Assembly: GCF_001194135.2 (NCBI RefSeq)
Contig: NC_068994.1
Coordinates: forward strand, 57,508,634 to 57,572,633
Source of the DNA: Octopus bimaculoides
Taxonomy: Eukaryota
Length of the DNA stretch: 64,000 bases
Direction: 5' to 3'
Shown piece after piece: positions 40,612-63,024 of this stretch (its first letter is position 1; each line of letters starts with the position of its first letter). The notes under the pieces are model-generated. The model was not told where the DNA came from, made no database searches, and saw nothing but the letters and a program-made list of their open reading frames with translations. The translations under genes and the position numbers were made by a program.

Positions 40612-41427
40612 TTACTCTTCTGTCAATTTTGTAACCCTGTCCATTTCTTTCTTGGCTTTTTCCTCGCGTTTTCGTGCTGCTTGCATGGATTGCATATGTT
40701 TGTAGTACATGGAGAAATGATTGACGATTATAGGGACAGTGAAACCAACCGTTAACACACCAGCAATAGCACAAGCAGAACCAATAAGTTTTCCTACGCT
40801 ACTCCTTGGGACCCTGTCTCCATAACCAACCGTAGTCATAGTGATCAGTGCCCACCACATACCCATGAGAATATGGTGGAAATTGTCCTCCTCGGCGTAA
40901 TAGATGAAAGTAGCAAACATAATCATACCGACGTTCATAAAACAAATCATCAACAACAAATCCCAGAAACTGGCTTTGAATGTGTACAGCATAATCCACA
41001 AGCCTGGGACATAACGGACCAAGCGGAAAATCCTGAGGGCACGAAATATTCTTAAAAAATTCACGTAATGCATGGTTTCCAATGCAACATTAGTCTCAGC
41101 TGTGTTGGCAACAATGATGTCGATATAATCAGGAAGAATTGCAACGAAGTCGACATAGTTTAGTGAATTCTTCGCGAATTTTTTCCAGCTTGGACAAGTG
41201 ATGAACCTGAAAAACAAGTCACATGAGAAAAATGCGAGACAAATGAAATCGATTATAATCAATGCCGGATGAGGTACATAGGAGTACATATCCAAATATT
41301 CCGTCTTGTTACTGCGTATTCGTCCCCAAAAACCGTGAATGCTTTCTACTTGGCAAGCTGGATGAGTAGCTACGATGAAAGATATTACGGACAGTGTAAT
41401 AAACGCAACTGTTGCCATACCATAAAC
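40612..41427 (-). CDS. Kv channel-core exon, copy A (Shaw/Kv3-like, S1-S6, short C-tail ending at a premature TAA)
   Basis: The translation has S2 DFICLAFFSCDLFFRFITCP, S4 NFLRIFRALRIFRLVRY, S5 ending FATFIYYAE (Kv3/Shaw-type YYAE), pore WWALITMTTVGYGD and S6 GFTVPIIVNHF. It starts at the acceptor ttctttttgttttatttctatcgacag|GTTTATGGTATG (phase 0). The ORF-track extension to 41583 is read as intron. Confidence 0.9.
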   Translation of the reverse strand, partial: VYGMATVAFITLSVISFIVATHPACQVESIHGFWGRIRSNKTEYLDMYSYVPHPALIIIDFICLAFFSCDLFFRFITCPSWKKFAKNSLNYVDFVAILPDYIDIIVANTAETNVALETMHYVNFLRIFRALRIFRLVRYVPGLWIMLYTFKASFWDLLLMICFMNVGMIMFATFIYYAEEDNFHHILMGMWWALITMTTVGYGDRVPRSSVGKLIGSACAIAGVLTVGFTVPIIVNHFSMYYKHMQSMQAARKREEKAKKEMDRVTKLTEE

Positions 41428-41460
41428 CTGTCGATAGAAATAAAACAAAAAGAAGCAATT
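41428..41460 (-). promoter_or_regulatory. 3' splice site and polypyrimidine tract of copy A (homologues at 48416-48448 and 61561-61593)
   Basis: aattgcttctttttgtttt(a/g)tttctatcgacag is conserved in all three copies. Further upstream the copies align only with frame-breaking indels, and copy B has an in-frame TGA at 48482-48484, as expected for intron. Confidence 0.85.
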
Positions 41461-60363: not shown

Positions 60364-61560
60364 TTATAACATAGATGTTTCAATATCGTTTATCTCGGGT
60401 CCACGGATGACATTTGAGTTTTCACCATTCATATGGCGATGAATGTCTGAATTATCCCAATTATTCTTGCTTGGTACTGGATTCCCAGTTTCTTTAGGTT
60501 TCTTTAATATATGTGATCCATTTGTCGTCTGCTTATTATTATTGGCAAGCATGTAATTTCGAGCAATTCCAACTCGCAAGCGTCTGAGATTATTGCGACT
60601 TGGCAAACTGTCGTAAGATGGCGGATGAAGTTTTGACGAAGAAGAAATATGCAGACGTGGTGTACGTTTTTCTTGTGGTTCATTAGAACGTAGTTTCGAC
60701 GAAGTCCCAGGTCCCATCTCTTCGGCTGGTAGTTCAATTATTTGTTCAGTTTCTATCAACTTTTGCAGCTGATCCAAATCTTCCTGAGCTTTTTTCTCAC
60801 GTTTCTCTGCTTGTTGCATGGATTGCATATGTTTGTAGTACATGACGAAATTACTGACGATAATAGGAACAGTGAAACCGACCATTAACAAACCAGTGAC
60901 AGCACATAACGAGCCAACAAGGTACCCTGCGTCACTTGATGGAGACATATCTCCATAACCAACCGTAGTCATAGTGATCAGTGCCCACCACATACCAATG
61001 AGAATATTGGGGAAATTTTCCTCCTCGGCGTAATAGATGAAAGTAGCAAACATAATCATACCGACGTTCATAAAACAAATCATCAACAACAAATCCCAGA
61101 AACTGGCTTTGAATGTGTACAGCATAATCCACAAGCCTGGGACATAACGGACCAAGCGGAAAATCCTGAGGGCACGAAATATTCTTAAAAAATTCACGTA
61201 GTGCATGGTTTCCAATGCAACATTAGTCTCAGCTGTGTTGGTAACAATGATGTCGATATAATCAGGGAGAATTGCAATGAAGTCCACAATATTCAAAGCA
61301 TCCTCAACGAATTTTTTCCATTCTGGACAAGTGAGGAACCTTGTGATTAAATCAAATGTGAAGAATGCGAGACAAATAAAATCGATTGTGATCAATGCCG
61401 GATGAGGCACAGTGAATAATGTAGCTTCAGAGTTCGTTCTGTTTCTGTGTAATCGTCCCAAAATGTCACGTTCCCCTTCTACTCGGCCGACGGGATGAGT
61501 AGCTATGATGAAAGACAATACGGACAGTATAATAAACACAACTGTTATCATGCCATAAAT
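60364..61560 (-). CDS. Kv channel-core exon, copy C (Shaw/Kv3-like, S1-S6 plus longest C-tail)
   Basis: Same motifs, with TTVGYGDMSP. Acceptor cgacag|ATTTATGGCATG at 61561/61560. The tail contains PPSYDSL and ends ETSML*. Confidence 0.92.
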   Translation of the reverse strand: MYGMITVVFIILSVLSFIIATHPVGRVEGERDILGRLHRNRTNSEATLFTVPHPALITIDFICLAFFTFDLITRFLTCPEWKKFVEDALNIVDFIAILPDYIDIIVTNTAETNVALETMHYVNFLRIFRALRIFRLVRYVPGLWIMLYTFKASFWDLLLMICFMNVGMIMFATFIYYAEEENFPNILIGMWWALITMTTVGYGDMSPSSDAGYLVGSLCAVTGLLMVGFTVPIIVSNFVMYYKHMQSMQQAEKREKKAQEDLDQLQKLIETEQIIELPAEEMGPGTSSKLRSNEPQEKRTPRLHISSSSKLHPPSYDSLPSRNNLRRLRVGIARNYMLANNNKQTTNGSHILKKPKETGNPVPSKNNWDNSDIHRHMNGENSNVIRGPEINDIETSML

Positions 61561-63024
61561 CTGTCGATAGAAACAAAACAAAAAGAAGCAATTAAAATAT
61601 GTTATAATCTTTAATAACGAACAAAAGTCATTTATCGTAGACAGTGGCACCAATGAAAATATTAGAAACGATTTGGAAGGCAACACATGTGTACAAAAAT
61701 AAAACCATTAAACGTATGTTAATAATCCATGAAACAAAATATTCAACCAATTTTTACCACACCATTGGGAAGAGTATTACTGGCGAGGAATAATAAAAGA
61801 CCTTTTTTTATACCTCTATATTGTATTCCAGGAAGAATATCCTCGAACTTCTTCCATTTTACTTGGTCGTTGGACCTATAAGAAATATGAGCCAACTCTA
61901 CCTCAAATTTGACCTTATCGTCTCAGATAAAGAAAAGACAAATTGAATAAAGAAATTCTAAAAGTACATCTTAAAACAGTGTTTTTTGCCAAACTGGGAT
62001 CGTATGACCCCTAAAGTTCAGTCGGTCCATAGAAAAGTTTGGGAAGTAGGTGGTGTCACAGACAAATGAAAAGAACCACACAACTATCAATCCGGTTTCG
62101 CCTAAAATTTTTTATTACTGTCTGTAACACTTCGAAATTTACATACTAAAATATATATACACGCACATACAGAATTTACTTTCTACAATTGAAAGTCTAT
62201 CATGAAAGGAAAAAAGGGTTTATTTAATACTTCGATAATAATTCATTATTGATCAATCATGTTTCAAGTTGGCATTGGAAAGTCTTGGATGAATTAAATA
62301 TTATGTTACTGCTTTGAAGTTCATATATCCGATAACAATCTCTAAAGGTAATTGCCTGCTTCCGTTTTTTTTTTTTTTCTTTTTTTGCTGGACAAGCAAA
62401 AATGAAGCCAAAACTGACTGTGATGACATCATAGAAAAACCTTGAGAGCAAACAAAGGAAGGAACCATTGTGAAACTAAAACATATAATTGGAAATAATC
62501 GAAAAGAAAAAGGATACAGTAACAATTTGAAGGATTCAAAACAAAAATTCAAAAAATACCACCGAAAAATTGATTCATTGTAGCAAAGTTAAGACGTTTA
62601 AGAAACACAGGACATTAAATCAGTAGAGAAATGAAGGAGACTGGAGAATAAATACATTTGAGAAAAAGATGCAAAGCATTATGATGCTGGCTAATATCCA
62701 TACATTTCAAGTTAGATAACGAAACCATAAATGTGGCCGAAACGGGGAAAATATGAAAAGAAAATATCTTTTAAAAAAAAATTAATATTTCTCTGAACAA
62801 AAGCCACGCCTGCACCTATCCCCCACTTTTTTCAACTGTTGTAACCCATTTTACACAATTTTCTCTCAGGTGCAGGTGTGGCTGTGTGCTAAGAAGTTTG
62901 CTTCCCAACCACATGGTTCCGTGTTCGGTCCCACTGTGTGGCACACTGAGCGCATGTCCTCTACTAAAGCCGACTACAGCTTTGAGAGTAGATTTGATAA
63001 ACGGAAACTGAAAGAAACCCGTTG

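Follow-up and report, generated by a model that had tools for sequence, protein, structure and literature searches.

Introduction

In the protocadherin and UGT1A genes, tandem paralogous large exons, each encoding a full module, are joined to shared exons and evolve in concert through gene conversion. The variable exons of these genes are located at the 5' end and have their own promoters, and the constant exons are 3'. The opposite order of parts was described for mod(mdg4), lola and other BTB genes of Drosophila, in which a constant N-terminal BTB-fold oligomerisation domain is followed by tandem variable 3' effector exons and the products share an assembly interface (PMC13490949, PMC6237743). 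In mod(mdg4), every isoform is produced by trans-splicing of RNAs from independent promoters (PMC13490949, PMC6237743). Here we describe a locus of Octopus bimaculoides that invites comparison with both of these systems. Namely, a 64,000-nucleotide (nt) stretch of its genome (the window) contained three exons, A, B and C, each encoding a complete core (transmembrane segments S1-S6) of a Kv potassium channel. Judging from their sequences and from existing gene models, these exons probably belonged to one minus-strand Shaw (Kv3-type) gene with four alternative 3'-terminal exons, of which they were the last three.

The diversity of Kv channels is usually ascribed to gene duplication, terminal splicing, RNA editing (prominent in cephalopods) and the formation of heteromers within the limits set by T1, the domain that determines which Kv subunits co-assemble. 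The 5' and 3' variants of Drosophila Shaker and the pore-region exons of lobster Shaker reportedly alter gating or the pore through splicing, and co-assembly compatibility is said to be kept. These cases swap termini or a single segment, whereas at the octopus locus the whole voltage sensor and pore were contained in one terminal exon, and we know of no Shaker-type case in which an entire sensor and pore are swapped in this way. To our knowledge, splicing of vertebrate Kv3 genes alters only the cytoplasmic C-terminus. In comparison, the octopus locus would exchange the whole of S1-S6 together with the tail and keep T1 constant. A search of the full-text literature found no description of a Kv gene in which S1-S6 is exchanged as a whole.

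Among the systems described so far, the Drosophila BTB genes, and mod(mdg4) most clearly, came nearest to the octopus locus, which had the same general order. However, its variable modules were membrane channel cores rather than zinc-finger or FLYWCH DNA-binding domains, and there were four of them in Octopus and two in Argonauta, as opposed to the 20-30 variable exons of the Drosophila genes. Moreover, the locus showed no sign of the trans-splicing that is used by mod(mdg4). It had tandem paralogous large exons and gene conversion in common with the protocadherin and UGT1A genes, but the polarity was opposite, with a constant T1 exon at the 5' end and variable cores as terminal exons. This reversal had been proposed in a first-pass annotation of the window and was borne out in part by our analysis. 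The protein itself was an ordinary member of the Kv3/Shaw family: human KCNC1 and the Drosophila and Aplysia Shaw channels have the same T1 with the HX5CX20CC motif, six transmembrane segments, the S4 arginines and the TVGYGD filter. The unusual part was the layout of the gene.

Materials and Methods

The window spanned positions 57508634-57572633 of CM046614.1 (GCA_001194135.2), and the overlap at window positions 50364-64000 was identical at 13,637 of 13,637 bases. Positions beyond 64000 are given as window-equivalent coordinates. The O. bimaculoides locus around C and the T1 exon was denoted L001. The loci of other species were L003 (99 kb, gap-free) and L002 from O. sinensis, L006 and L005 (gap-free) and L004 from O. 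vulgaris, and L009 (gap-free) from Argonauta hians. Primes (A', B', C', D') denote the orthologous cores of other Octopus species.

Evidence for splicing was taken throughout from published gene models (RefSeq, UniProt and NCBI isoforms). The main protein models were P0001 (XP_014769438/39/40, 597 residues), P0007 (UniProt A0A0L8HTU3), P0003 (XP_052828570, identical to A0A0L8HTY1), P0126 (XP_036364619, isoform X1), P0153 (XP_036364620, isoform X2), P0002 (XP_036364621, isoform X3) and P0121 (CAI9732656). The T1 profile was built from 67 Shaw-family T1 domains, and all frames were scanned with it. A protein search with the T1 region only returned just five proteins, all of them T1-only or unspliced, and missed P0001, P0002 and P0007, which contain the query; the word index behind this search was thus unreliable. 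Ratios of nonsynonymous to synonymous substitution rates (dN/dS) were obtained from orthologous comparisons between two Octopus lineages, with dS of 0.10-0.23.

Results

Three complete cores behind homologous acceptors

Core A was located at 40612-41427, core B at 47330-48415 and core C at 60364-61560, all on the minus strand; the coordinates represent the coding sequence read from the splice acceptor and include the stop codon. All three open reading frames matched the Pfam families Ion_trans (E-values of 8e-32, 3e-31 and 2e-31) and Ion_trans_2 and encoded S1-S6. In A, these segments were followed by a short tail ending in ...TKLTEE. The terminal exon B had a tail ending in -EETKM and the terminal exon C a 157-residue cytoplasmic tail ending in -ETSML, in both cases directly before the stop codon. 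The protein sequence of A was 82% identical to B and 74% identical to C, and core C corresponded to residues 200-597 of P0001 at 100% identity. None of the five listed assembly gaps (46991-47000, 45796-46236, 44449-45084, 50437-50885 and 51600-52506) fell inside an exon, all of them being intronic or intergenic.

The three exons began at closely similar acceptors with the consensus ...ttgcttctttttgttttRtttctatcgacag/(A/G)TTTATGG, where the slash after the lower-case letters marks the start of the exon, one residue before S1. Namely, the acceptors were cgacag/GTTTATGGT in A, cgacag/GTTTATGGC in B and cgacag/ATTTATGGC in C, all in phase 0 and all preceded by a long pyrimidine tract. Alignment of ten acceptor regions showed that the similarity extended into the intron. 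The 3' end of the intron above C (61561-61820, minus strand) contained the pyrimidine tract, the acceptor and a block of ~260 nt common to B and D, the latter being a further core outside the window. A shared block, pyrimidine tract and acceptor were likewise found above B (48416-48680, minus strand), for which the homology also reached ~260 nt. Above A (41428-41580, minus strand), it stopped ~150 nt from the acceptor, at ~41580, as had been noticed in the first reading of the sequence. The same reading had claimed three complete S1-S6 exons behind homologous phase-0 acceptors, and the open reading frames, Pfam matches and acceptor alignment all supported this. The phase-0 donor and acceptors were intact in all 10 Octopus copies of the core that were compared as well as in the two cores of Argonauta (four species in total). 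In the last 90 nt of the intron, C and D were 92-98% identical, more than at the start of the exon (80-85%).

Each core had its own stop codon, and hexamers AATAAA or ATTAAA occurred 250-1200 nt 3' of the stops. These were candidate poly(A) signals, although such hexamers are weak evidence in AT-rich DNA. The hexamers 3' of C and D were conserved in position, and in C a cluster of ATTAAA and AATAAA stood ~250 nt past the stop codon. The 3' flank of B was duplicated downstream of A (window 45085-45588 and 39385-39655), with both segments matching L004 12909-13398 and L002 16339-16596. Thus, the exon had been duplicated together with ~150-260 nt of the intron before it and 2-3 kb of its 3' flank.

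A single T1 exon upstream of four cores

Scanning all frames of the window with the profile detected no T1 (the best match, on the plus strand with E=20, was noise), in agreement with the first-pass annotation, which had predicted a T1 exon beyond 64000. Exactly one was found there. This exon, of ~580 nt, was located at window-equivalent ~97852-98432 (L001 12046-12626), 36.3 kb upstream of the acceptor of C. It ended in ...SSHGAK/gtaagt (GCGAAA/gtaagt, with the donor at ~57606485 on CM046614.1) in phase 0, which was the phase of all core acceptors. The T1 profile matched once per species in O. bimaculoides, O. sinensis and O. vulgaris, with 261 bits, and all other matches had E>2. PF02214 was recorded on P0001, where the zinc motif HX5CX20CC was legible as H-IPVNV-C-20 residues-CC.

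A fourth intact core, D, was located between the T1 exon and C at window-equivalent 67569-68492 and had an acceptor of the same kind, at ~57577125 on CM046614.1. Therefore, the three-copy array described earlier was correct for the window, where A, B and C were intact, but the complete array held four cores, with the first one outside the window. On the coding strand, the order was T1, 29 kb, D, 6 kb, C, 12 kb, B, 6 kb and A, so that D to A covered ~27 kb. The end of the window at 64000 abutted a 1088-nt assembly gap upstream of C.

No additional T1 was found in ~200 kb of gap-free sequence from O. sinensis and O. vulgaris that comprised the T1-D' and D'-C' intervals, 19.5 kb of the 25-kb C'-B' interval and all of B'-A' (best spurious match with E=4). 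The whole interval from B' to A' was covered by overlapping L004 and L002. Gap 46991-47000 was spanned by one continuous O. vulgaris alignment, and the flanks of gaps 45796-46236, 44449-45084 and 50437-50885 mapped co-linearly to sequenced DNA of O. vulgaris or O. sinensis without a T1. Two of these, 44449-45084 and 50437-50885, had been named at the outset as places where each copy might have a T1 exon of its own. The idea of T1 exons hidden in gaps was thus excluded for every interval except the 907-nt gap 51600-52506.

Gene models joining one T1 exon to different cores

Published models joined the T1 exon to more than one core. In O. bimaculoides, the RefSeq model P0001 (XP_014769438-40) contained T1 and C, and the UniProt model P0007 (A0A0L8HTU3) contained T1 and D. 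The two proteins were 100% identical over residues 1-199 and divergent from there on. In O. sinensis, one NCBI gene had three isoforms: X1 consisted of T1 and C', X3 had a different first exon followed by T1 and C', and X2 consisted of T1 and B'. Accordingly, X1 (P0126) and X2 (P0153) shared an identical T1 that was followed by different cores. The annotation of O. vulgaris included partial models on C' (P0127) and B' (P0128).

The X2 model spanned 101 kb and skipped both D' and C'. Similarly, intact upstream cores were skipped by P0001 (D), by X1 and X3 (D') and by the Argonauta model P0123 (the first core). Skipping of intact cores in the right phase was not expected of an ab initio predictor, suggesting that these models had transcript support. 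Additionally, the O. vulgaris model P0121 (CAI9732656) spliced the T1 exon to a small exon beyond D', so that the predicted protein contained T1 and a tail of 38 residues but no core. Thus, transcription from the T1 exon appeared to read past D' in this species. The ortholog of the small exon in O. bimaculoides was located between D and C at 63635-63751 on the minus strand, with the acceptor ttttacgtag/AGGTGT, and further orthologs were found at L006 76547-76660 and L003 77353-77466. In O. bimaculoides, its frame stopped after four codons (RCYI-TGA at 63739-63737). Possibly, this exon serves as a decoy or poison terminal exon, or else a T1-only regulator is made from it.

The beginnings of the cores also pointed to a coding exon upstream. 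Core D started with IYST and the two Argonauta cores with IYGG and VYGL, and in all three the first methionine was in the middle of S1 or later. Without a usable start codon, these cores needed an upstream coding exon and would not form a stand-alone channel. On the other hand, A, B and C all retained the methionine of YGM. Taken together, the proposal that one T1 exon can splice to A, B or C agreed with the models for C (RefSeq) and B' (isoform X2) and could be extended to D, but A was present only in models without T1. A single T1 serving several terminal cores was therefore supported for C, B and D by comparative anatomy and by existing gene models.

Comparison among octopods and selection on the cores

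The same layout of T1 followed by an array of cores was present in O. sinensis, in O. vulgaris, where the sequence was largely gap-free, and in Argonauta hians. Both Octopus species had one T1 and then D', C', B' and A', with introns ~1.5-2 times longer than those of O. bimaculoides. In Argonauta (L009 10004-21866), one T1 preceded two cores with intact frames of 383 and 398 codons, located 6.4 and 10.5 kb downstream of it, so that the entire set was within 12 kb. The acceptors of these cores were cag in phase 0 after long CT-rich tracts whose sequences were not related to that of the Octopus intron block. Thus, the combination of one T1 exon with an array of cores predated the split between Octopus and Argonauta. 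In the cuttlefish Acanthosepion pharaonis, a single core exon with an acceptor of this type was found and the flanking 10 kb on each side contained no further parts, which was evidence neither for nor against an array in decapodiforms. We also considered parallels among bivalve and gastropod proteins named as Shaw-like isoforms and rejected them: the sole pair with identical T1 flagged outside of cephalopods among the retrieved proteins, two isoforms of Ostrea edulis, differed only at the extreme N-terminus.

The S1-S6 regions of all four cores were under purifying selection. The dN/dS was 0.41 for D (p=8e-4), 0.45 for C in comparison with O. sinensis (p=0.015), 0.30 for B (p=2.6e-6) and 0.35 for A (p=9e-5). 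All open reading frames were intact in both Octopus lineages, and A was 87% identical to A' of O. sinensis (dN/dS of 0.34 with p=6e-5 for this pair). The cytoplasmic tails evolved in a nearly neutral manner between species, with dN/dS of 0.86 in B (47330-47630) and 1.24 in C (60364-60830). The tails of B and C nevertheless kept a PPSY motif and the terminal -ETKM and -ETSML.

A mutually exclusive cluster of the Dscam type, based on pairing between docking and selector RNA, was another candidate arrangement that we dropped. When reverse complements of the 160-nt acceptor blocks were compared with the intron between T1 and D by blastn-short, which does not allow G:U pairs, only chance matches of at most 12 nt (E>=0.2) and TA repeats were obtained.

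Two features outside of the array can be mentioned here. The O. vulgaris interval between C' and B' contained a separate model of a same-strand gene (L004 1-9822) encoding 263 residues with no Pfam hit, which extended into the 5.7-kb counterpart of gap 51600-52506. The part of the window at 1-40000 was dense in TA, CA and CT microsatellites, included 17 assembly gaps and had no credible open reading frame.

Copy A and gene conversion

The sequence of A was a mosaic of its neighbours. From S1 to S2-S3, it was 86-100% identical to B, and from S3 to the P-region it was 63-100% identical to C. The S3-S4 linker was TNTAETN in A and C of O. bimaculoides and VYTVEAN in A' and C' of O. sinensis, and within each species A shared species-specific substitutions with B and C. 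A dead remnant of a long C-terminal tail, out of frame, was located 3' of the stop of A at 40421-40606 on the minus strand. The TAA and a 1-nt deletion at this tail were common to O. bimaculoides and O. sinensis, and the truncation was thus old. Nonetheless, the remnant carried the species-specific substitutions of the tail of B in the same species. The mosaic structure of A and the dead tail tracking B therefore indicated that gene conversion was active in the array.

The models P0003 of O. bimaculoides (293 residues) and P0004 of O. sinensis differed in how they began. The first coding exon of P0003 had 22 codons (MNSKVDFHGIGTQKIKNWKKIP, residues 1-22 of the protein), was located at 45163-45228 on the minus strand with the donor GTAAGA, and was spliced to the acceptor of A. 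This exon sat in a dispersed repeat resembling a short interspersed element, other copies of which were found, for example, at L003 74240-74391 and L002 773-904. Its ATG and donor were conserved in O. vulgaris, and an intervening deletion of 18 nt was in frame. P0004 began at the YGM methionine. The product of core A may lack T1, contain it or occur in both forms.

Channel type and differences among the cores

The best match in the PDB was human Kv3.1 (8f1c and 7phh, E=8e-79), which placed the channel in the Kv3/Shaw type with a match score of 269 bits, in comparison with 240 for Kv2.1, 220 for the Kv1.2 chimera and 213 for Kv4.2. The T1 matched that of Aplysia Shaw (3kvt), and the retrieved relatives were named Shaw or Shaw-like. 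All copies had the TVGYGD filter, A and B kept the PIIV gate region, and the S4 sequence was LRIFRALRIFRLVRY. Between A, B and C, S4 and the S4-S5 linker were 100% identical, and S5 was 91-100% identical.

Most of the differences were found in the S1-S2 loop and the S3-S4 linker, in the turret, in the residues that follow the filter, in S6 and in the tails. The second residue after GYGD was S in C, Y in B, V or I in A and F in D, and each was conserved or conservatively replaced in the ortholog. This residue corresponds to Shaker position 449, which sets external block by tetraethylammonium and C-type inactivation. Additionally, the outermost S4 arginine was lost in D. The tails of B and C had ends similar to PDZ ligands (-T/S-x-M/L, namely -ETKM and -ETSML). 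Core D had an acidic repeat tail and A was cut short, both without a PDZ-like end. Products sharing one T1 would be expected to form mixed tetramers with differing biophysics.

Discussion

According to the proposed gene model, transcription would start upstream of the single T1 exon, and splicing would then connect this exon with any one of the four tandem cores, which follow each other as D, C, B and A. Each terminal exon would supply a whole voltage sensor, pore and S6 gate together with its own tail, stop codon and candidate poly(A) signals. The choice between them would be a competition, typical of alternative last exons, in which an acceptor and the poly(A) site following it are used or the polymerase reads through to the next exon. 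We considered this model likely, our confidence in it being limited mainly because its transcript basis was visible only through annotation and because one 907-nt gap was left. A broader proposition was put forward more tentatively, as a possibility that we rated somewhat short of even: each of the four cores, A among them, would be a genuine alternative last exon under regulation, and the single transcription unit to which they belong would have been conserved since the ancestor of octopods.

Several observations weighed against the model. All evidence for splicing was second-hand, coming from annotation pipelines. The model joining T1 to D may be an ab initio prediction, as D was the nearest core below T1, and neither D nor D' was used by any NCBI isoform. 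No gene model joined T1 to A, and the only models of A were T1-less. The search for hidden T1 exons covered everything except the 907-nt gap 51600-52506 upstream of B and its 5.7-kb counterpart in O. vulgaris (OX597827.1 25038708-25044381). Moreover, the dN/dS of 0.3-0.45 was high for a channel core. Finally, the shared intron block was 87-95% identical between orthologs, which was not clearly above neutral DNA (~89%). With ortholog identity so close to background, the similarity of this block among paralogs may reflect gene conversion rather than a regulatory element. Since conversion tracts were also present elsewhere in the array, we rejected the block as a selected splicing element.

The most serious competing explanation was that A, and perhaps B as well, forms a T1-less gene apart from the others and is transcribed from a promoter of its own. 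Translation would then begin either at the (V/I)YGM methionine or within a small exon further upstream. This explanation was in line with P0003 and P0004, both without T1, with the agreement of RefSeq and the earlier annotation on P0003, with the conservation of the ATG and donor of the small exon in O. vulgaris together with an in-frame indel, and with the YGM methionine kept in A, B and C. In addition, Shaker-type channels with T1 deleted can still assemble, if less efficiently. However, the small exon was within a dispersed repeat and might have been predicted in error or be a start site of minor use, and A retained an intact pyrimidine tract and phase-0 acceptor like the cores that were modelled with T1. 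As to B, its ortholog B' was joined to T1 in isoform X2. The lack of a start methionine in D and in the Argonauta cores suggested that splicing to T1 was the ancestral mode, and both modes can coexist for A. We regarded a separate T1-less gene as rather unlikely. A more drastic view of A and B was that they are pseudogenised orphan duplicates without function, in keeping with the loss of the long tail of A through a stop and a frameshift, the absence of a T1 isoform with A and the fairly high dN/dS. But reading frames of 271-398 codons were intact in both Octopus lineages, the S1-S6 dN/dS of A and B was significantly below 1, the TVGYGD filter, S4 arginines and PIIV were kept, and even the truncation point of A was conserved between species. 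This alternative, which had been raised in the first-pass annotation, was rejected on the basis of the dN/dS values and intact frames and retained hardly any credibility.

The remaining explanations concerned the source of T1 rather than the fate of the copies. The array could represent several complete tandem genes, each core having its own T1 exon in a gap. There were five gaps between the copies, and two of them (51600-52506 with 907 nt and 44449-45084 with 636 nt) were each long enough for an exon of ~580 nt. Nevertheless, four of the five gaps mapped to inspected DNA, the gap-free intervals of O. sinensis and O. vulgaris were devoid of T1, the gap-free Argonauta locus had one T1 and two cores within 12 kb, and isoform X2 joined the distant T1 to B'. 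Such hidden exons were therefore very improbable. Alternatively, separate RNAs could be joined to T1 by trans-splicing as at mod(mdg4). The octopus locus has the layout of that gene, with a common BTB-fold exon and many variable 3' exons, and a candidate internal start was found upstream of A. On the other hand, all parts were co-linear on one strand, making cis-splicing sufficient. Furthermore, the acceptor blocks showed no conserved complementarity to the intron that follows T1 (best match of 12 nt, E>=0.2), and nothing in the locus pointed specifically to trans-splicing, which we considered highly unlikely as well.

The alternative use of terminal cores by a single T1 exon is already present in part in public annotation, in the form of isoforms X1 and X2, yet it appears to have passed unremarked. 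One practical consequence is that counts of cephalopod Shaw-like genes come out wrong when they are based on core-only models, such as the T1-less A and the partial models of O. vulgaris. The locus combines duplication with splicing: the membrane core was duplicated and diverged, and a single T1 exon was retained. With one T1, the paralogous cores cannot diverge in assembly specificity, and their amounts could be set post-transcriptionally from one promoter. The locus thus offers a testable system for the roles of T1 and core identity in co-assembly and for the choice among terminal exons spread over ~27 kb. A T1-only product of the small exon at 63751 might act as a regulator of assembly. If the full proposal is true, neurons of these animals would choose complete sensor-plus-pore modules behind a fixed T1, and the resulting family of co-assembling subunits would give heterotetramers whose pore and gating properties are graded and whose targeting tails differ. 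The locus would then be the first known case of a Kv gene in which splicing exchanges the entire transmembrane core.

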